DNA of 64,000 nt from Oopsacas minuta (Eukaryota > Animalia > Porifera), in NCBI GenBank assembly GCA_024704765.1, contig JAKMXF010000019.1:1-64000 (forward strand). Direction: 5' to 3'. Numbering within the stretch: position 1 is the first letter of the stretch; every line of letters begins with the position of its first letter. Position numbers and translations under genes: made by a program. Shown piece after piece: positions 2,821-24,019 of the stretch. The notes under the pieces are model-generated. The model saw only the letters and a list, made by a program, of their open reading frames with translations. It made no database searches and had not been told where the DNA came from.

Positions 2821-3100
2821 TTCTTATTCTCGTATTCGGTCTCATTTCCCCCATTTTATTGTTCCTTATTATTATTAGTTGTCACTTACTTTCTATAGAA
2901 TGTTATTGTTTACTATTAACACTCAATTGTGTATAATAAAGAGGCGATTAGTGTAATTTGTAAATTATTCCATTTCTTTGTTATTCTATTCATTCAATGA
3001 GTCATATGACTTATTTTAAATACAAGTTTTTGATCTCTCTTCTTCCCCCGGTTGGAGAGGTAGCGGGCAGTGTTGGCAGGAATGGGAACAAAGTTATAAC

Positions 3101-3432
3101 TTAGCCATTTTCATGGAATTTGACTTGTGGCATGAACAGATGGCAATAACCATGAACTGGCATGAAATGTCCTAGAACTTTGTAAGAATATTGTGTGGCA
3201 TGAACTGGTCACATCAAATAACAACACTGCCCTTGGGTGACTAGAATATGTTAGTTTATCACCTACCCCACTCTAAATGCTGCCACTTGCCTAATCATGT
3301 GGCCAGTTCATGTCACAACAATGTTCTTGCCAAGTTCTAGCCAAATACATGTCCTATTAATGTCACAAAGCTCACAAGTTCATGGTTCTTGCAATATTCA
3401 TGCCACTAGCTAACGTACATGAAAATGGCTAA
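3101..3432. mobile_element. Foldback/MITE-like imperfect palindrome
   Basis: ttagccattttcatg (3101) pairs with catgaaaatggctaa (ends 3432); inner arms gtggcatgaactggtcacat / atgtggccagttcatgtcac also pair. Confidence 0.55.
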
Positions 3433-3740
3433 TTCTATGAATTTGTTAGTGCACGGCTACTCTAGGTCGCATCACTGTTTATCGATGCTGGTCCACCAGA
3501 AATTGGCTGATTACTTAGGGGTGTTTGTGAGGTTTTAAATCAGATTGTGGAAATAATTCAGATACTTCCTAGAAGTTGCAAACTTAGAAATTCCATTCAA
3601 ACAATCTGGATTTTGTTCCTAAAATAATTAATTATTGAAAGGAATCCTATTCAGTTACTAACACGTCCATTTGGAATGTCCGTTAGGCTGACAAATAGTA
3701 TAAATTTACATAAGGGATAATGTTTATTTCACAGAACTAA

Positions 3741-5970
3741 ATGAGCACAGACACTGGAGTTACAAAATCTAATTCTCTTCCCCCTCTCCTCTATCACTCG
3801 TCCCTTATAAAATCGGGATGGTGTTTGAAGGAGAGCGGATCGACCTTCATGGGATCCAAGAATTGGAGACGCCGTTTTTTTCGATTGACAGAGTTCCATG
3901 GTTACATTTCCTTGTCCTACTTCAAGTCGTGTAGTGACGAACTGCCAGCTGGGATAATCCCTCTGGATAGGACATACACTACTAGAATCATAGAGCTAGC
4001 TGCTAAAGGAAAGCTACACTGTTTCGCTGTAGGTCCGCTTATAGATGACGGGTCGTCTCGTACATATTATGTGTGTTGTTTGAGTGATCTGGAAAAGAAG
4101 GAATGGATGGCTGCTATTGAGGCAGCTATTGAGGGTAAGGATGAAGTTTATTGACGAACTGGTATTTGTTATAAAAATTGAAATTTGGTATGTGTGTGGA
4201 GTGTGATAAAGGGTCAAATCGATCTCTCTCAAACCCTCTGACAATAGGTGACGAATGTGTCCACCTTTCAGATATGAGGGTTTACCAGTAGGCTGATATT
4301 GTATTTGTTGTGATAAATATATTTCATAGGTGTTCCTCAGGATGCAATGAGACGTGTTAAGACCCTCAGGTCTCGGAATATGTCCCGGAGAGCAGCTAGA
4401 CCTACCCCTGGTGGAGAGGAAGATCCCCTGACTATTGTTACAGATAATGAACCTTCTGATCCTAATGGAGTGGTAAGTAGTATTACTTTAAAATACGTAC
4501 ATCAGGTGTTCGTACATTTTGACTATTGTTTCGTTGCTAGGATACAGAGGAATTCGATAGACAAATGAGTGAAATGCTTGGAGTAAAGAGTTCAGAACTG
4601 AGCCTTCCCTCTCCTACCTTGAATAAGAAGTTTTCCCTCCCCCCTCTATCTAGTCTTGATATCGATCCAATCCTCCTTGACACCCCTGATAGCAATCCTC
4701 AATCATCTACTGATGATGAGGATGATCTGGATTTTGAGACTTGTACAGGCTCTGTATATGATTGTATTAATAAGCCGTTATCAATTGGTAGGTTCTAACC
4801 AATCAATTTACAGTAAAGATAGGCTTAACTACTTTATTCATACAAATAAATGTCTTACAAACACTCAAATCTGATAGGGTGTTATATTTTGTCACCTGTC
4901 TCAGAGAGGTGTGAATATTTTCCTAAGGTATTTGGAACATTTCCTGGATTTATGAGTTACACACACATACCGACTTTCAAGTTTATAGCTCTGAAAATTT
5001 CCCAAAAATCGATATTCAATTATCGACACTTTTAACAAATAAATCTGTTTAGATCTCACATCCCTAGAGGATTACCGTAGCAGTAGATGGCGTATAGACC
5101 AGTGGTTATCAATGAAACATAAAGTAGAGTCTACAAGCTGGAAGAAAGTAGATACTAGTCATGAGATAACTCTAGCTAGAACTAAATTCAGTTCAGAATA
5201 TCCTGTCTTAATTAAGGTATTGTATGACTCCTATATTTAACCATGGATGGTGGGTTTAGTTTATTTCCTTGGATGGTGTTCTATGTCATTTTGAGACAAT
5301 CATCGCTTGGTTGGAAGAAGGGGATCTGTGTGTAAGATAAAATACACGAATTACACCATCCATGGTTAATTATATAATAAGTGGTGACCATTTTCATCGA
5401 ATCTTAAATAACAAAAATATGAATTTGATTATTCATATTTTCTAGTTAGAAGGGAAGTTAGAAGCAGATCCTCAGATAGCTCTAGAATACTTTAAAAATG
5501 CAATTAAAGTAGGAGGAAATTTTGACCATCCCTTTCGTAACGAAATTATCCTAGAATATATTCCAGAAGAACCTGAGGCTGTTGTCATACAGAACTACTA
5601 CCATGTGCCTATTCCTCATATGGATAAACGAGAACTAACAGCTCTTCGTTATTGGGTACCATCCTACATGGATACGGACAATTGCTCTGGAATGGTAGTT
5701 ACTAGAATGAATCATCCTCAGGCAGTTAAAATTAGTGACGTAGAAAAAATACTTCTGTCACCAAGTGGTTTGATCCTGAGACCACATTTTGAGCCCAGTG
5801 GTGAACTACACACTTATTGTACCGTATTTGTACAGATTAATGTCAGAGGGTCTCTCCAGAGGATGTTCAAGACAGCTTATAATTCAGGGCTTCTAAAACT
5901 TGGTTTGAGATCTGTTTTTGGACAGATTAAGCAACATGTAGAAATGTTTGTACGTGCTATGTCTTTGTAA
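3741..5970 (+). CDS. PH domain + START domain lipid-transfer protein (CERT-like architecture), about 5 exons
   Basis: N-terminal PH (KSGWCLKE..KNWRRRFFRL..EKKEWMAAIEAAI); acidic Ser/Thr-rich linker; C-terminal START-like region (SWKKVD..LEGKLEADPQ..HVPIPHMDKRELT..SGLILRP..TVFVQINVRGSL); canonical splice sites link the exons. Confidence 0.75.
5241..5365. mobile_element. piggyBac-type MITE in PH-START intron
   Basis: 12-bp TIRs ccatggatggtg / caccatccatgg flanked on both sides by TTAA (5237-5240 and 5366-5369). Confidence 0.7.
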
Positions 5971-7331: not shown

Positions 7332-7583
7332 TAATCTAAGTTGTCCTGGTAACCTCCCCCCCGGTTAAAATTTACTTTCTGGAATTATAAGGATAAATTA
7401 GTTGACATCAATTGTACTAATTGTATAGGAAAATATTCGAATAAGACATAGCACTTCGGTTAGTACCTACTATTGTAAGTTTCCCGCGGGGCTACGTCTT
7501 ATCAGAGCTCTACTGTAGTTATTTCAGGCGGGTATTCGATATTTCAGGCGCTACATACTGTTATCTAATTTTTGTGTGTTAGT

Positions 7584-10500
7584 ATGAGTTTAAATTATCC
7601 TAGACGACCTAACAGTATAACTAATCCAGCTCATCACATACAGCATGTTACGATAAATAACAAACCTACTGTCAGATCACCAGGGGAACAACCTGTAGGT
7701 ATTTTAAAGTTCCCTAACTCACTATCCTCACTCTCTCCTGAGGAGGTAGAGCAATATCTCCAGACACATCCAGACTTCGCTAGACACTATTACATGTACT
7801 ATTACGCGCCAAGTGAAGTGGATCAGCTGTCCTCCTCCAGGCCATCTCGCACCAGGAGACTATTCAGCCGTAAGAAGGGTACAAGCATAAATAAGAGCAG
7901 ATGGTCTACAACACACCAACCGACCATCATCCAAAGTACAGGAGGTAAAACAGCTAATTGGTATAGAACATCTATGATTACGTATTAATAATATACTATC
8001 TCATTTAGGTTCCGGATACTCAGACCCCGGAGACAGTGGTTCCCCTACCTCAGAGAGCTCTAACACTTCCTATCTGAGATCCTTAGGGTCTCTCCCAGAC
8101 CATGACCTCCTTATAGAGCTCGTTAAAGACATAGCATCAGATTTAGATCTAGTGATGTTATGCACTAAAATCATGCGTAATGTATCTCCATTAATGAATG
8201 CGGATAGATCTTCTCTATTCCTTGTAGAGGGTACTGATACCTCCAGACGACTAGTCTCTAAAGTGTTTGACATCTCAGAGGTTAGTTCTGGTTTATATAT
8301 CTGTAATAAATTCATTGGGGGAAATAATCCCGTGTATAGTCTCCATGTAGTAAGCATTCCAAACGCATATTCCATATTTACAAGGTGTTACTTGATACCA
8401 TAGGGTTCGTCAGATCTCTCCTCTGACGGCTACCATTCTGACTCATCCTTCCCTGAGGTGACAATAGGCTGGGGTACAGGTATAGTAGGTCATGTAGCTA
8501 AGACAGGAGAGACAGTATCAATACCTGATGCATACCAGGATGACAGATTCAACAAAGAAGTAGATGAGAAGACCGGATATTTGACTAAATCTGTGCTATG
8601 TATGCCTGTTAAGATAGAGAGTAGTAATAAGAAAGATAGCTTCATTATTGGTGTTGCTATGGCTATTAACAAATCAGGACCCAGTAAGTCTATTGTGCCT
8701 TTCTCTACTGAAGATGAAAAGGTTTGTTGTTGTTGTTGGTGTTGTTGTCGTTAAACTCCTTTCTGGAGGTGTCATAATGTTATGTACACGGGCCACTTGT
8801 GTCCTGTGGTATGCTCTGAAGATGATACACTTGTTGTAGTTAAGTTCGACCTCACTACCTAATTATATTGTTGTTTATTACATCATATTTGTTGTTATCA
8901 ATACTCTCGTGTAGATATTCGCCAAGTTCTTGACCTTCTGTGGAATAGGCATAAGAAACGCTCAGAGGTTTGAGAGAGTACAAGAAGAAGAAATATTCAA
9001 ACACAATCTCCTTAACATGGCAGAACTATTATACAATGATTTCTCTTCAATGGAGACTTTTGCTAAAAGAATAATGGAAGTTAGCTATGAGATGCTAGAC
9101 TGTGAGAGATGTACCGTCTATGTTCTGAAGGAGAGAACAGGTTTAGATGATGATACCACTTTCAGTGAAGTTTACACATATGAGCCTGATAGCGACAAAG
9201 AATTCGCCCCTGAGAAAGTATTACCAAGAAGTAAATCTAAATTCAGTATCAGGAGATTGAGTGCTACTTGTTTGTCAGTTAGAAGTGGTCTTGTTTATGA
9301 CGTAGCAAGAACAGGTCAGTAAAATTTCTTAAATATAATATTTTTGAAAAGAGTGGCACAAGGTTAACTGCCACATGGCAGTAAATTAAGTGGCTGTTAA
9401 CTATTAGACACTATTTTCAATGACTTTTTGTTTAGGAAATTGTAAGAATTTGAACTTGAGAGACATGAGTCCGTTATCAGAATCCTGTCTTGAGATGGAT
9501 AACATCTATGAAGGAGATACGAATGTATTAATGATGCCAATATGCTGTAGAGGCAAAGAGATTGTGGGAGTAGCACAGTTCGTGAACCGATCTGATAAAA
9601 ATCCTTTTAACGAGGTGGATGAATCCAATTTTGCAACTTTTGCCATATTCTGCGGATTGGGTATAAAACATATAAACGATTTTGAGCGGGCTAGGACACT
9701 ATTAGCTCAGCAAAAAGTCACAATCGAGCAACTAACATATCATATCGTAGCCTCCGAAGAGGATGTTAAGAAATTATCCAAACAGATGATACCTAGTGCT
9801 GGAGAAATTGGGTTAATTGATTTTGACTATTATCTAGATAATGCGGATGATGAGAATAGTATACTGTATGCTGTATCAATGTTTCAGAGCCTGGGATTAG
9901 TTAGGAAATTCAGTATTGATCAGACTAGCTTAATCAAATTCCTTCTGACACTTCGTAAGAACTACAGACCCGTGTTGTATCATAATTGGTGTCATGCTTT
10001 TCATGTTGCAAATTCCATATTCGTTATTTTAGAGACAGGGGGTATGTCTACTAGATTCACAGATTTGGAGAAGTTAGCTCTCATGATTGCTTCATTTGCT
10101 CATGATGTAGATCACAGAGGAACCAATAATAAATACCAGCAGGAATTTGATACTCCTCTGTATAATCTTTATAATACAAGTACGATGGAACATCATCACT
10201 ACAAGTAAGCTGTAATTGAATTATCTGTTATATTGTAATACACGCTTGGATAGAAATTGTATAAATATACCCCGAACTTTCAAAGTAACATAAATATATC
10301 GGTCATACCGAATTCCACATGGATGGGAGTATTTATTGTTCCTTTGAGGATTAACTGTATTTCTTAAAATATACTGAAGGGGCTGGTAATTGGTCCTTAC
10401 CCTTATGAACTATTAACACCTATATTGTATTCTCCAGACACTGTGCTCTGATCCTACAGTGTGAAGATCACCAGATCCTCTCCGGTCTATCCAAGGAGCA

Positions 10501-17051: not shown

Positions 17052-20000
17052 ATGGGTAGCCGTATTAGTCTAAACATTCAATCAGGTAGTAGTAGGTTTC
17101 GTATTCCAGATCTCCCTTCCAGCACTACAGTATTAGCTGTTAAGAAGGAAATATTCCAATACACAGGAATATTCATCAATAACCAGACGCTCAAATTCAA
17201 AGGAGTTGTATTGCAAGATAGAAATACGTTAGGGGAATGTGGAATTAAGACAGAGAATACTATTGAAGTAGAAGAGAGAGGTTCAGACTCTCAGAAGATA
17301 TTTATTGAATCTATACACGGAAATAATCTGATTACTCTAGATTACAACCCTGATGACACCATTCTGAGTATTAAAAGATATTTTCTCAGAGATTTGAGTA
17401 AGTTGAATTAGATAGTGGTGTCAACTAACATTTCATTATTTGTAATATCACAGATATTGAGATTGAACGTCAGAAGCTATTCTTCACAACAATCCTACTC
17501 CAGGACAATGAGAAACTGTCTAAGTACAAGATCCAGGAGGGTACTAAGCTGAGGTTAGAGATTACTCAACTGGATCCAAACTGTATCATGATTGAGATGC
17601 CGACAGGTCCGGTGTTAGACCTTGAATACAATGAAGACTTAACTATTGATAATCTGAAACAAACAATTTCGAGCACTGCTATGATTCATACAGACGAAAT
17701 ACGATTGTTTTTTAAAGAGGAGCAATTAGAAGCTAGGAAAAGCCTCTCGAAATATCACATCAAAGTAGGTGACACTCTTAAGCTTAAGCTACGACCTAAA
17801 GGAGAAATTATAATATATATTGACGCCCCTACAACCAAACAAACAGTTACAAATTTGACACTTGAGAATACCATCAGTGATATTAAAGTTAAGATTACTA
17901 ACGAAGCGAATATTCCTTTAGAGAAACAATCTCTCTATTTGGAAGGGGTGGTGTTGGAAAACGAGAGAACTTTACTGCATTCAGGAATAGAAGATGGATC
18001 AGTTATCAAGCTAGTACTAGAAGGACCAACTATTATGAGTATTTTTGTAAGATATAATTCAGAAAAGATCCCAATTGATGTAGACTCAAAATCTACAGTA
18101 TTGAATCTTAAAACTATTCTCGTAAGAGAGACTAAAGTGCCGGTAGAAGCTCAGAAGTTGGTGTTTGCTGGTAAATTGCTTGAAGACGATAAGGAGTTAT
18201 CTTCATACAGAATTCAGAAAGAAGTTACTGTTCATTTAATTCAGCAATTCAAGAAAGAGGAAATACAGATTGTAGTTAAAACTCATAATGATAATGATTT
18301 CCCTATTTCAGTGCTTCCTCAAACAAAGATTTATGCAATAAAAGAGACAATTGCTCACAAAGAATCCGGCGCAGCTGATCAGTACCTACTGACATTTTCA
18401 GGACGTATATTAGAAGATAATTCTAGAGTATCTAGCTATGAAATAGTGAATGAATCCTGTCTGCATATGGAACTTAAGCGAGAGGATAATGACCCACAAC
18501 CCCCAGTCCGTATGCGTTCCAGAGATGTTACGGTGAGTGAGTGTACGTGTGTTGTAATCTATTGAATAGATTTAATAATATAAACATTTATACGTGTATC
18601 TAGGGTGACCCATTCAGAAATCCAACATCCTCTATTCAAGATTTACCTCAACCAATCCTAAACCAACAACATGACGATCTCCCAGCCTTATTTGAACCGC
18701 CACGCCATTATCAGAACTTTGATTCTCCGCAAGTTTCATATGCTCGTGAAAACATTGGCCCTCGTTACTCTAATGAGAGAATTCCACTCCCACAGTCCAA
18801 CAAATATTTAGCAACTGAAATGCCTGACCTGCCTCCTCCAAACTACCGTTCTTTTAGTCCTAGTGGGTCCACCTCGGGCTCCTCAGCTATCCCAGAGAGA
18901 TTACCATATAATCCATTCCCTTACAGGTCCAATATACAACCAATGATGGGAAGTGGATATGGCCGACAAAATGTAACCGTGGGTGAGTATCCCTCACGCC
19001 AATATGTCTTGCGTAACCCTAGTGGCTACATTCTTCCTGATCAGGTGGATCTTAATAATTTTCCTTTACCACCACCCTTTCGTCCTGATCATGTTCTCAT
19101 GCAAGAAAGCTATAAGATTGAGAACACTAGAGATCCTTTACCTGAGCACAAGATCTCCATTAGAGTATCATTTCTGTGTAGCGAGGCAGTTAACATTGAG
19201 ATTAAAGATAACGCTACAATACTTGAAGTTAAGAGAGCTATAAAAATTGAGAAAGGGTTTATTGAAGAACATCAAAAGATCTATTTTAATGATTCAATTT
19301 GTGGAGATACACAGATATTGACAGATCTAGAAATTGTGGATAACAGTGGAATACAAGTTGATATACTATACAGCTGGAATGTGTGTTTCTTACATCACCA
19401 AATGATCATCAAATGTTATGCCAGTTCTAATATCGCTGATATTAAGAATTCTATTTTTGAAAAAGAGAAAATACCAGTGGAGAATCAACGGTTATTCTTG
19501 GAGGATAGAGAGCTATCTAACGAGCAATCTCTCAGTCACTATCAACCAGGACAAAATTTAAAATTTACCCTAGAAATAACTAAAAATATTTTGATTCTGT
19601 TCTCGTCTGGAAAGACTTTCATACTCCATAGCTGTCACGTTAAGATATCAGGGAAATTTATCAAGGAGCAGATCTACCAAAACTTCAAGATACCTGTAGA
19701 AAACCAAACACTGACTTATCTTGGTAAAGAAATAAAAGATGACCTAACTCTTGAGGATATTAAATATAGAGAAGAAAATAAAATAATTATTAACATTGAT
19801 TTCCATAATTCTAGATGGATAACTGTTTTGTTAAAGTTATCGAATGGGGATCAACAGCTCATAAAGATTCGTAGTCTGGATACAGTAGGGAAGCTTAAAA
19901 GTCTTGTGAATACTAATAGCTCTCTCCTAGTTGATGATCATGACTTTACTTATAATCATTGCAATCTATCCGATGAGAATATCATTGATTTCTACCAAAT

Positions 20001-21138
20001 TCGTAACTATGAAGAAATATCAATGTTTTCTAGTGAATTTAAAGTTGTTAATATGACACTGTTGAGTGGATGTGTTGAGCCTTTCTGTCTTAAACACTTT
20101 CAAAACCTCGAAAATATCAAAAGACGAATGCAGAATCAGTTCAGACTACCTCCAAATTACAATAAATTGTTTTTTGGGAAGATCAGGAATGTAGCTAATA
20201 TTAACCCACAGCATATCTCAAATGGTGAAAGCGTGTTCATAGGTCCTAACAATTCAATCTTAGTCTCTATTCTCTCTTCAAACAGTAGAATAATAGAAAT
20301 TCTGATAATTAAAGAAGAGCGAGTTTTCTCATTAAAACAGAAAATTGAAATGAAGGAGCATATTCCTATTCATGTTCAGCAATTGAGTTTTGAAGGAATT
20401 TCTATGGACAATGATACTTGTATTGGTAACTTCAATATTTCACCTAACAGCACTATCTTCCTTAACATATCAGAAGAGCCTATTAGCATTTACCTAAGAG
20501 ATGATGCTAATAATACTATACATTTCCCTCAGATAGATAGATACTTGTCTGTACGATTCTTAATGAAAAATCTAATTCAAATGGGCTACACTATTCGAAA
20601 AGATGATTTATTCGTGTTTGAAGGAACTGTTTTACATTCCAATGCTCCACTATGTTACTATGGTATACAGAATGGATGTAATTTGAGGTTTATCAGTAAA
20701 ACAGCGTCTAACTGTTTGTCTTCATCTCATCGAGGTTGTACGAGTGATAACAGAATTCCTTTTCAAGCTCCTAACCAGTTCAGTACTCCTATACAACACC
20801 AAGATGAGAGTGTACCCAGCATTGCTTGTACTTCCTGCATGCAGATCCAGTGTATTTGTGTAGTCCGTCTTCATTCACACACCGAGTCAAATATCGGGAT
20901 CAGGCCCCGACGGGATTTTACTCCATATTTTAATCGCCCTAAATCCGGTCCAATACACCCAGACATACAACAACCACATCATAATCATGCTAAAATATCT
21001 GAACCATATCCGTCGACCAACTTGCCCCAATCTCCACCATTCTATAACACTCCCACTAATCAGGATAGAAGTCATCGAGCTGAATATCAACCTCCATCTA
21101 ATCAGCACCATGGAAACTATCATACTAATTATGACTGA
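17052..21138 (+). CDS. Poly-ubiquitin-like protein A (about 1,319 aa, about 13 divergent UBL domains)
   Basis: Exons 17052-17397, 17454-18532, 18604-21138 join in frame (3,960 nt). Repeated UBL motifs such as IPLEKQSLYLEGVVLENERTL and VPVEAQKLVFAGKLLEDDKELSSY; Pro-rich linker between UBL6 and UBL7. Confidence 0.85.
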
Positions 21139-21313
21139 TTTCAAATGGCTGAAAGGTTGTTCTACCGAATTACTGATTATCTTTTTGATTCAGGTATTTT
21201 TATATTTTATACTATACTGCTGTGTGTTTTATTATATCAATTGCGTATTTTGAGAGTTCTCTACTTATCATATTCGATCCTTCCACCTCTTTTACTTAGA
21301 ATTTATAGTCTAA

Positions 21314-24019
21314 ATGCAGATCAAGATCCTGACTGACCGCAATGAGATAATAATAGAAGTAACCTTTACTGACAGAATTGATGCAGTTAAGGAGAAAATC
21401 GCTGAGAAGCTAGGATGCGAAATTCACAGACAGCGTCTATCATTTCAAGGAGTTATCTTAGAAGATCACAAGCAGATATCACAATACCCTATTTCACAAG
21501 AATCCAGTCTAAACCTTGAAATACGAATGAGACTGTATGTAAAGATGGCTAGCATGACGCTAGATTTGGATTGCTATCCTTCCTGGAGCATCAGTGAAGT
21601 GAAGCATGAGATTGGCCAGAAGGTACAGGTACCAGCCAACAATCAGATGTTATCATACAAAGACGAAGAGCTTAAGAATAATAAAACTGTTAGAGATTAT
21701 GATTTCAGAGATCAAACTTGTATTGCTATGTCTGGAGTTATTATGGTCACTGTTAATTTCCCTTCTGGTAAGTGTATGCGATATCCTTTCGACCAACAAG
21801 CCACTGTATTTGCCATAAAACAAGAAGTTTGGGAGAACGAGCGCATTCCTACTGATCGGCAAACTCTCAACTATAAAGGAAGAGAGCTGAGAGGTGATCA
21901 GACATTCTCTTCTATCCGCTACAGAGATGGAGACAATATTTATCTAGCTATTCAACATTCACCTGCAGACATAATACAAGTATTTGTTAAGACACCTATC
22001 GGCCAGAAGCGCTTTATCAGTATAAGCAAATATGAAGCTGTTGGAAGGATTGAGGATAAAGTTGGGTTTCAGCTAGAAGATCTATTTTCACATATCTGCT
22101 ATTACAAAGGTAAAGTGTTAGATGACGTTAATGTAGTAGAGGTCTATAATATACAACAATTGGCTGAGTTAGAGCTGAGGTCTTGTGAAGACAGAATTCC
22201 TGTGTTTGTTATCTTAGCTAGTGGAACTGTTTCTTCTTTCTACGTAAAACCGAGTGAACTTGTATCTGACGTGACTGCACGAATTAGATCGAAGCTGCAT
22301 GTTCCTAATGAACACAGGAAACTCTATCATAATCACAGGCTGTTACCGAACGATCAAATAATAAGAAATTGTGACATGATTCCAGGGGATAATCTCTTAT
22401 TCGGTACTGATGACTCGTTTAGCATAACTGTGTATCCATCAGGGATACCAGTTGATATTCTAGTACGAAATACTGACAGGATTAAGGATTTGAAGTATCA
22501 AGTCGAACGGAGGGAGAAAATTCCTTTTCATTTGCAAGAGTTTACATTTCAAGGTTCCATTCTAGATAACGAACAGCTTGTGTCTAGCACTCAGTTGAGA
22601 TGTGGAACAATGATTATACTCACTATTATCTCAAATCCTAGCAACATGATCGATGTAAAGTTATTTGATCTCTCGAAAAATAAAATGAACATTGCAGGTA
22701 ATTCCGAGTTTTCAACAGTAGGAAATTTACAAAATAGGATAGCATTTAGTGAGCAAGATGTCTCCTTCGTATTTAAAGACATCGTCATGAAGCAATCCAA
22801 GCTATTAAGCAACTACGGGATAAGGCATGAATCGGAGATCTTGGTAGTTAGTGCTAATTATAATATATTAGCTGTTCCGCCTTCTAATACCAATAGATCC
22901 CATTATACTGGAACAACTCCTGCTGAAAATGTTAACTATGACAGTAGAAACCAATTTCCTGTGTTTAATGCTAATTATCAGGATGGCGCTTCTTCACACC
23001 TGAACTACCCTTATCAACAACATCAACAGCCTGATCAACCACCATATCAATCACAACAGCAACAAACACATATTCATCAACAACAACCACAATATCATCA
23101 ACAACCTCGACAACATACGAATTTTTCTCCTCAACACTCAAATATCCATCAACAACATACAAATTTTCCTCCTCAACAACCACAATATCATCAACAACCT
23201 CGACAACATACGAATTTTCCTCCTCAACAAACAAATATCCATCAACAACAAACAAACTTTCCTCCTCAACAAACAAATATTCATCAACAACATACGAATT
23301 TTCCTCCTCAACAAACAAATATCCATCAACAACAAACAAACTTTCCTCCTCAACAAACAAATATCCATCAACAACAAACAAACTTTCCTCCTCAACAAAC
23401 ACAATTTCCTCAACAACAACCACAAAATCAAAACACTTATCCTCAACAACAATCCCAGCATGACACACCTTCTGAACTAGTCCTCTTATCCTCTTTACCA
23501 ATACCACATACTGAAAATTTTGAACAGTCGCACGATCGATTAGACTTCCTGACCAAATCAACTATCGCATCTAAAGAAATCTGCATGCATTTATCGCATC
23601 ATGTAACTGGTACTTTTCAGGTTCAGTGTACTACTCATGAATCAATAGCTACTCTCAAAGAACGTATATTCCACCACACACGCATTCCATCTAGCAAGAT
23701 CCATCTCCTGCATGATGACCAACTCCTTTCTAATGATAAAAGGACCCTAGAGGAGTATAAAATAATGTATGACAGAGTAATTAAGCTGAATGATCTACTT
23801 CGAATTTCTGTGACTTATGAGTCAAATGATATCATAAGATGGGTGAATGGGATTGATTTTGTTAGCACTTTAGGTGCAGATATCGCCGAGGAGTTGAAAA
23901 TGGATAAAGATAACCTCATTCTTACATATAAAGATGCGATATTGGATTTTGATAAGAGACTCAATCAATATCAAATTGACTTTGATTCTAAAATTATTGC
24001 GGAAAAAATACGTAAGTAA
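21314..24019 (+). CDS. Poly-ubiquitin-like protein B (901 aa, about 9 UBL domains, Q/P/N-rich repeat insert)
   Basis: Single long ORF; UBL motifs (HRQRLSFQGVILED, IPTDRQTLNYKGREL, IPSSKIHLLHDDQLL). A possible extra 3' exon to 24137 is described in findings. Confidence 0.88.
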   Translation: MQIKILTDRNEIIIEVTFTDRIDAVKEKIAEKLGCEIHRQRLSFQGVILEDHKQISQYPISQESSLNLEIRMRLYVKMASMTLDLDCYPSWSISEVKHEIGQKVQVPANNQMLSYKDEELKNNKTVRDYDFRDQTCIAMSGVIMVTVNFPSGKCMRYPFDQQATVFAIKQEVWENERIPTDRQTLNYKGRELRGDQTFSSIRYRDGDNIYLAIQHSPADIIQVFVKTPIGQKRFISISKYEAVGRIEDKVGFQLEDLFSHICYYKGKVLDDVNVVEVYNIQQLAELELRSCEDRIPVFVILASGTVSSFYVKPSELVSDVTARIRSKLHVPNEHRKLYHNHRLLPNDQIIRNCDMIPGDNLLFGTDDSFSITVYPSGIPVDILVRNTDRIKDLKYQVERREKIPFHLQEFTFQGSILDNEQLVSSTQLRCGTMIILTIISNPSNMIDVKLFDLSKNKMNIAGNSEFSTVGNLQNRIAFSEQDVSFVFKDIVMKQSKLLSNYGIRHESEILVVSANYNILAVPPSNTNRSHYTGTTPAENVNYDSRNQFPVFNANYQDGASSHLNYPYQQHQQPDQPPYQSQQQQTHIHQQQPQYHQQPRQHTNFSPQHSNIHQQHTNFPPQQPQYHQQPRQHTNFPPQQTNIHQQQTNFPPQQTNIHQQHTNFPPQQTNIHQQQTNFPPQQTNIHQQQTNFPPQQTQFPQQQPQNQNTYPQQQSQHDTPSELVLLSSLPIPHTENFEQSHDRLDFLTKSTIASKEICMHLSHHVTGTFQVQCTTHESIATLKERIFHHTRIPSSKIHLLHDDQLLSNDKRTLEEYKIMYDRVIKLNDLLRISVTYESNDIIRWVNGIDFVSTLGADIAEELKMDKDNLILTYKDAILDFDKRLNQYQIDFDSKIIAEKIRK
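23040..23460 (+). repeat. Coding tandem repeat, mainly 42-bp unit encoding TNFPPQQTNIHQQ(Q/H)
   Basis: Repeat visible in both the DNA and the 901-aa translation. Confidence 0.9.

Follow-up and report, generated by a model that had tools for sequence, protein, structure and literature searches.

A conserved pair of sponge genes encoding 22 diverged ubiquitin-like domains without Gly-Gly sites

The first 64,000 nucleotides of the forward strand of contig JAKMXF010000019.1 (hereafter the window) from the glass sponge Oopsacas minuta (assembly GCA_024704765.1) contain, at positions 17052-24019, two adjacent plus-strand genes, A and B, which encode 13 and 9 ubiquitin-like (UBL) units, respectively, without a single Gly-Gly (GG) dipeptide. 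The searches covered the O. minuta genome of 61.5 Mb in 365 contigs, in which the window corresponds to contig C19. An earlier reading made from the letters of the window (the sequence-only reading) had described two tandem genes here, A with three exons and about 13 UBLs and B with about 9. These coordinates proved exact, and the total of 22 units was reached by profile search and orthology.

Architecture of genes A and B

Gene A, assigned from its open reading frames (ORFs) and splice sites, begins with the ATG at 17052 and consists of exons 17052-17397, 17454-18532, and 18604-21138, which are separated by two GT-AG introns of 56 nt (17398-17453, phase 1) and 71 nt (18533-18603, phase 0). 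Its translation, including the predicted junction codon, is identical to the NCBI/UniRef protein P0007 of 1319 residues, named 'Polyubiquitin [Oopsacas minuta]'. Exon 1 supplies the start codon, the N-terminal sequence MGSRIS, unit A1 (17058-17285), and the first half of A2, which is divided by intron 1. Exon 2 resumes with the second half of A2 (to 17578), continues with A3 (17579-17806), A4 (17807-18031), A5 (18032-18262), and A6 (18263-18493), and ends at 18532 within a Pro-rich linker that begins after A6. In exon 3, a Pro/Ser-rich linker of 181 residues without Pfam match (18604-19146) precedes the second array (19147-20709), formed by A7 (19147-19371), A8 (19372-19596), A9 (19597-19818), and A10 (19819-20049), and from 20050 to 20709 by the weakest unit A11 (20050-20253), A12 (20254-20484), and A13 (20485-20709). 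The low-complexity tail of 142 residues, rich in Pro, Ser, Asn, His, and Gln (20710-21138, including the stop codon), carries a CxxCx4CxC motif and terminates in …GNYHTNYD without a terminal GG.

Gene B starts 175 nt past the stop codon of gene A and is a single plus-strand ORF for 901 residues (21314-24019, stop codon at 24017-24019), in which seven UBLs, a linker, and two further UBLs follow one another. The N-terminal array (21314-22864) comprises B1 (21314-21529), B2 (21530-21742), B3 (21743-21967), the weak unit B4 (21968-22192), and, from 22193 to 22864, B5 (22193-22414), B6 (22415-22636), and B7 (22637-22864). The Gln/Pro-rich low-complexity linker of 237 residues (22865-23575) includes about seven copies of a 42-nt (14-codon) tandem repeat (23110-23418, in the stretch 23060-23419; 85% match), which encodes QQTNIHQQQTNFPP-type units; the linkers of orthologues are other Gln/Pro-rich sequences of other lengths. 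The C-terminal pair (23576-24019) is formed by B8 (23576-23800) and B9 (23801-24016), directly followed by the stop codon. At its N-terminus, B1 reads MQIKI, compared with MQIFV in ubiquitin, while the C-terminus of protein B, …AEKIRK, lies approximately at the end of the last UBL and has neither an LRGG-type tail nor a GG. A and B were also considered as one spliced gene, a reading that was rejected because the ATG of B comes right after a TAA in the same frame and the orthologues all have their initial Met here.

UBL units were detected with Pfam PF00240 in a six-frame search of the genome and then with a profile iterated on the A/B locus. PF00240 matches all four coding pieces with E values from 1e-16 to 2e-71, and 15 units individually exceed the Pfam curated cut-off in the six-frame search. 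The iterated profile recovers every unit except A11 at E ≤ 1e-5, 21 in all, and gives E = 0.67 for A11, the 22nd. A11 fits the array by position, shares 48-51% identity with its orthologues, and contains a stretch, 'LPPxxxKLFFGK', that resembles 'IPPDQQRLIFAGK' of ubiquitin. On the strength of position, orthologue identity, and these landmarks, it is counted as a UBL, giving 13 + 9 = 22. The units have a period of 68-79 residues, mostly 72-77, compared with 76 in ubiquitin. Their high divergence, already seen by the sequence-only reading, amounts to a mean unit-to-unit identity of 17.7% with a maximum of 36% in a multiple alignment, and to 13-43% identity with O. minuta's own ubiquitin, with B1 at 43%. 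The best cross-matches between the genes are scattered rather than collinear (A6-B1, A9-B3, A8-B6), and A and B were thus rejected as recent duplicates.

LRGG junctions and a terminal GG, whose lack in both proteins the same reading had noted, are absent: no GG dipeptide occurs in 2220 residues. With 2.7 expected at a Gly content of 3.5%, this absence is not significant as a depletion. More telling are the junctions of the orthologues, where few GGs occur and none is conserved, and the end of B without an LRGG-type tail; the orthologous C-termini likewise lack a terminal GG. By sequence cut-off and by the fold models described below, A and B belong to the ubiquitin family PF00240 with its beta-grasp fold. 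Their repeats are not near-identical and are without RGG-M junctions and a terminal GG with cap residue, which separates them from polyubiquitin precursors; nor do they expose the C-terminal Gly-Gly or Gly of conjugatable modifiers such as ISG15, FAT10, NEDD8, and SUMO. They share GG-less UBLs within a larger chain with integral UBL-domain proteins (type-2 UBLs or ubiquitin-domain proteins) but not the partner functional domain. In agreement with the lack of a recognised enzymatic domain, a Pfam scan of the linkers and tails of A and B returned no domain, neither enzymatic nor of the UBA type. A and B contain no transmembrane segment, the highest Kyte-Doolittle mean over 19 residues (1.66) lying inside a UBL. 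Taken from sequence, these features support the view that A and B are non-conjugatable, without the GG sites used by ubiquitin-processing proteases, and suggest that they are not processed.

Conservation, selection, and predicted fold

Loci of relatives come from five separate assemblies (L001-L004 and L018; L005 is a duplicate locus), which together with O. minuta make up the six assemblies referred to below. L004 and L005 probably stem from metagenomes of the glass sponge Vazella pourtalesii; the BioProject number occurs in the corresponding paper, but the sample number was not found. A word-index search with B identified four relatives at 39-51% identity. In these (L001-L004), three A pieces are followed by B and, in L001-L003 as in O. 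minuta, by an RNA-end-healing gene; the L004 contig stops before the position of this gene. A profile search added the more distant A-B pair of L018 at 37-42% identity. The syntenic pair is present in at least five other assemblies (L001-L004, L018), and another word-index search found exon-2 orthologues in further ones. At L018 the called neighbours differ, with VWA-Vint and P450 genes upstream and none of the Pfam families of the RNA-end-healing gene on record downstream. The sequence-only reading had linked A and B to a nearby TRAF array and E2/U-box genes; this link is one of proximity, and the neighbours called at L018 are others.

In L001-L004, the top match of each O. minuta unit is its positional orthologue, which mostly scores about 2-3 times as high as the next-best match; with A2, the unit divided by intron 1, the difference is slight. 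Of the 22 units, 17 also match their positional orthologue best in L018, with smaller margins. This one-to-one matching implies that the 22-unit architecture is older than the split of the sampled species. Moreover, the three-exon layout of A recurs in at least six assemblies, and donor and acceptor of intron 1 apparently lie in the same place in the orthologues, whose unspliced ORF translations read …DLS / D-IPIERQ. Conservation is strongest in A1-A2 of exon 1 (63-68% identity) and in exon 2 (55-65%).

Selection was measured as the ratio of nonsynonymous to synonymous substitution rates (dN/dS) by the Nei-Gojobori method in two closer orthologue pairs (dS 0.5-1.6). The ratio is 0.11-0.16 for A1-A6, 0.17-0.21 for A7-A13, and 0.21-0.27 for B1-B7, and rises to 0.33-0.42 for B8-B9 and to 0.41-0.90 for linkers and tails. 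These ratios mark A and B as functioning genes whose domains are constrained and whose spacers are relaxed, and on this point the dN/dS comparison proposed by the sequence-only reading bears out that they are real genes under selection.

Outside the UBLs, two short motifs of protein A are retained. Its N-terminus reads MG[SG]RIS in five assemblies and MGDGIS in L018, where G2 and S6 are kept. MG[SG]RIS passes a PROSITE-type N-myristoylation pattern (consensus M-G-x-x-x-[S/T]) and represents a candidate myristoylation site. The CxxCx4CxC motif (20827-20859), located about 40 residues past A13, is kept in five of the six assemblies and absent from L003; R-x-H comes next in four assemblies, while the rest of the tail is unconserved. 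For this motif, which has no Pfam match, a zinc knuckle and a lipidation cluster are both conceivable. The 181-residue linker is poorly conserved and contains one PPNY motif that does not align with the motifs of orthologues. PPxY/LPxY motifs occur in the linkers of most orthologues but are non-aligned and embedded in Pro-rich context, and were set aside as a weak lead.

Models were predicted with AlphaFold2 on 5-sequence orthologue alignments and compared with PDB structures by Foldseek. Structure prediction, likewise proposed beforehand, yields confident beta-grasp folds for A12, A13, and B5-B7, with a predicted local distance difference test (pLDDT) of 72-94 (A12 and A13, 74-88; B5-B7, 72-94) and a predicted template modelling score of 0.65 for the B4-B7 model. 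A10 is intermediate (pLDDT about 55-60), and the models of A11 (below 45) and B4 are poor. The best structural matches are linear di-, tri-, and tetra-ubiquitin, ISG15, and the UBL array of USP7. The alignment to tetra-ubiquitin spans 311 columns and covers approximately the entire 299-residue model.

In contrast to the fold, the Ile44 patch of ubiquitin did not come through the inspection that the sequence-only reading had called for. At least three hydrophobic or His positions of the L8/I44/H68/V70 patch are retained in about 4 of 22 units (A5, A11, B5, B7), and charged residues are frequent, with Glu, Lys, or Asp at ubiquitin positions 68 and 70 in many units. This loss in most units weighs against a generic recognition by ubiquitin readers. 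Averaged over units, conservation among orthologues is highest in the core (0.67) and even over the surfaces (Ile44 face, 0.52; other surfaces, 0.48). Within single units, many patch positions are invariant across orthologues, as for A3 (P-F/Y-K-K) and A4 (P-Y-K-V), a pattern that would fit either surfaces specific to each unit or a chiefly structural role.

Multi-UBL proteins elsewhere and polyubiquitin-like intermediates

An exhaustive profile search of 1.84 billion representative sequences returned 4324 matches at E ≤ 1e-3, of which 223 reach E ≤ 1e-30. True orthologues score at least 400 bits, and none outside the sponge set is found among these matches. Scores then drop to 323 bits and below, where a crowd of multi-UBL proteins begins. 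By a local scan of their units, many of these contain 10-25 UBLs that are 30-50% identical to ubiquitin, with zero or few GGs; the uniqueness implied by the sequence-only reading is therefore given up. Giant examples are P0018 (2495 residues, 25 units), P0020 (1911 residues, 22 units), and P0019 (1739 residues, 21 units), whereas canonical polyubiquitins form a separate group with 95-100% ubiquitin identity. All diverged multi-UBL proteins with a species name are from diatoms, namely Cylindrotheca closterium (CAJ1957214.1), Nitzschia inconspicua (KAG7338706.1), Pseudo-nitzschia multistriata (VEU37537.1), and a record labelled Psemu1, and others sit on large eukaryotic contigs of metagenome assemblies. 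The pennate diatom proteins P0165, P0041, P0106/P0179, and P0181 are 1100-2100 residues long, contain 11-19 diverged UBLs with few GGs or none, and are named merely 'ubiquitin family' or 'ubiquitin-like domain-containing' protein. P0158 from a JGI/IMG metagenome is a hypothetical protein of 5416 residues with at least 22 UBL units over a quarter of its length.

Collinearity of A/B with P0020, P0018, P0019, and the diatom proteins was sought and rejected (Spearman rho about 0). On the same grounds, P0020 with its 22 units is no fused A+B orthologue. Judged from their sequences, the other arrays appear to be either separate expansions or too old to trace. In the present sampling, A and B thus seem confined to the sponge set, and the class itself appears to recur. 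The protein atlas lists generic ubiquitin clusters only, including plant clusters of 4-5 UBLs, and no account of a natural protein that combines many diverged UBLs turned up in full-text literature searches.

Additional UBL-encoding loci lie elsewhere in the O. minuta genome. Two polyubiquitin-like ORFs near ubiquitin, one with 4 units and one with 3 (C66:371500-376500; L010:560-1560 and 3600-4350) carry KNG, KNA, or RGT in place of RGG at their junctions and possibly represent a non-cleavable polyubiquitin, an apparent intermediate stage. Three ORFs in a row with one UBL each (C110:174500-184499; L008:921-1967, 3089-4198, and 7359-8129) include two with weak, sub-threshold matches to the PARP catalytic domain, and UBL matches extend to about C110:188468. 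A further ORF of 473 residues (C110:570500-573500; L009:892-2313) encodes four UBLs followed by a Cys-rich C-terminus without Pfam match. In the wider search, P0006 (L006:10001-13855) is a mosaic of 17 units, in which central, near-canonical RGG-joined repeats are flanked on both sides by diverged GG-less units; its gene adjoins a protein kinase gene, and P0016 is a similar mosaic. The ORFs with KNG/KNA/RGT junctions and the mosaics P0006 and P0016 support a descent of such arrays from polyubiquitin by loss of cleavage sites.

Possible roles and relation to known systems

The explanation that we favour, with confidence that is evenly divided, is that A and B are polyubiquitin-derived multi-UBL scaffolds that are neither processed nor conjugated and of which A is possibly membrane-anchored. 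Their ancestor would most likely be a gene of the polyubiquitin type in which the Gly-Gly cleavage sites disappeared; the units would then have diverged, and each has remained distinct from a time before the sampled sponge species separated. The full-length products would form 'beads on a string' of beta-grasp domains with flexible Pro/Gln-rich spacers, and their 13 + 9 distinct modules may serve as a multivalent scaffold that binds partners non-covalently instead of tagging them. Protein A would be held at the membrane through its N-terminal myristoyl group.

Several observations weigh against this explanation. The word-index searches for transcripts gave only genomic ORF pieces and the NCBI model. 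The myristoylation site consists of a motif match only, and MGDGIS of L018 fails the PROSITE-type pattern at position 3. The models of A11 and B4 are of low confidence on the 5-sequence alignments, and a binding face shared by the units was not found, the Ile44 face differing little from the other surfaces in the unit average (0.52 versus 0.48). Finally, a purely structural role, or one as a spacer, would explain these data just as well.

More speculative, and in our judgement a minority possibility, is an extension of the scaffold explanation: an unrecognised class of non-cleavable poly-UBL arrays that would have arisen repeatedly from polyubiquitin genes in glass sponges, diatoms, and other eukaryotes, with each unit as a docking module and A myristoyl-anchored. 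The array would then be a hard-wired, unit-coded counterpart of the ubiquitin chain, an idea that we put forward with equal reserve.

A structural or mechanical protein without unit-specific partners, acting as an extensible linker or condensate-forming matrix, perhaps located at the membrane or cytoskeleton in syncytial tissue, seems unlikely to us. It would account for a conservation that peaks in the core and is even over the surfaces, for long, species-variable, low-complexity Gln/Pro-rich linkers, and for the recurrence of giant 10-25-unit arrays in unrelated lineages without collinearity. However, within a unit many of the patch positions do not vary although dS is saturated, which points to constraint beyond fold maintenance, and nothing points to secretion or filament formation.

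The sequence-only reading itself had suggested a pre-assembled chain mimic or decoy, in which the arrays would be read as linear chains resistant to deubiquitinases (DUBs) and would sequester or activate proteins with ubiquitin-binding domains, proteasome receptors, or pathogen DUBs. Part of this idea stands, as A and B are non-conjugatable, contain no cleavable GG junctions, and come closest to linear tetra-ubiquitin in layout and fold; a few units even present a hydrophobic Ile44-like patch (B7, L-V-L/Q-V; A5, V/I-H/Y-I/V). Its recognition part fares worse. The L8/I44/H68/V70 patch is lost in about 18 of 22 units, often to charged residues, and identity to ubiquitin is as low as stated above. 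Linear-chain readers (UBAN/NZF complexes) use the LRLRGG tail and the proximal Phe4 surface, neither of which is retained in the units. The TRAF array and E2/U-box genes are linked to A and B by proximity, and the neighbours called at L018 are others. We regard chain mimicry as rather improbable.

Precursor polyproteins that are cut into free UBLs by a GG-independent protease would suit a descent from polyubiquitin, whose products come by cleavage, and the short, accessible junctions of 3-8 residues. Nevertheless, no junction motif is conserved between species, several junctions run continuously from beta-strand to beta-strand in the models, and the free products would be without GG for activation, so that we consider this case very improbable; the division of A2 by intron 1 has no weight here. 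That A and B are functionless, decaying polyubiquitin copies or annotation artefacts, as the automatic NCBI name 'Polyubiquitin' and the lack of a transcript among the word-index matches might suggest, is scarcely credible in view of intact frames of 1319 and 901 residues, low dN/dS (0.11-0.27), unit-for-unit conservation, and a three-exon layout shared by at least six assemblies with an apparently fixed intron 1.

Few eukaryotic proteins are as conserved as ubiquitin, whose tandem genes are the textbook case of repeats that are kept identical. A and B, by comparison, form a tandem array without cleavage sites, whose repeats have diverged and which as a whole has long been under purifying selection. 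Similar arrays in other eukaryotes have been named automatically, for instance 'polyubiquitin' or 'ubiquitin family protein'. If such proteins are indeed multivalent scaffolds, they would add a third use of ubiquitin-like domains to those as modifiers and as single adaptor domains, and a common annotation error would be corrected. At present, their practical value is that of a defined, conserved test case of 22 units with known orthologues. New are the conserved A-B pair, the unit orthology, the selection profile, the N-terminal and Cys motifs, the fold matches, the loss of the Ile44 patch in most units, and the many other GG-less arrays of 10-25 UBLs.

Among known systems, polyubiquitin of the UBB/UBC type shares the head-to-tail PF00240 units, the period of about 76 residues, and the MQI start (B1) with A and B and is their likely ancestor. 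It differs in its identical repeats (about 18% identity in A/B), its RGG-M junctions, and its terminal GG with cap, while A and B add long Pro/Gln-rich linkers. Without RGG-M junctions and identical repeats, the products of A and B cannot yield free ubiquitin. ISG15 and FAT10 likewise carry tandem diverged UBLs in one chain, and ISG15 is one of the best structural matches, but they comprise two units with a C-terminal (LR)GG for conjugation instead of 13 and 9 units without GG. The GG-less giant multi-UBL proteins of plants, diatoms, and metagenomes resemble A and B in their 10-25 diverged UBLs, few or no GGs, and lack of other domains, whereas they are not collinear with them and show neither the A-B pairing nor an MGxxIS start or Cys motif. 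The HUBL array of USP7, another structural match, consists of five tandem, divergent, non-conjugatable UBLs. It is the appendage of an enzyme, in contrast to A and B with no other recognisable domain. The integral UBLs of USP7 are non-covalent interaction and regulatory modules, and this array is the best analogue of how A and B could work.

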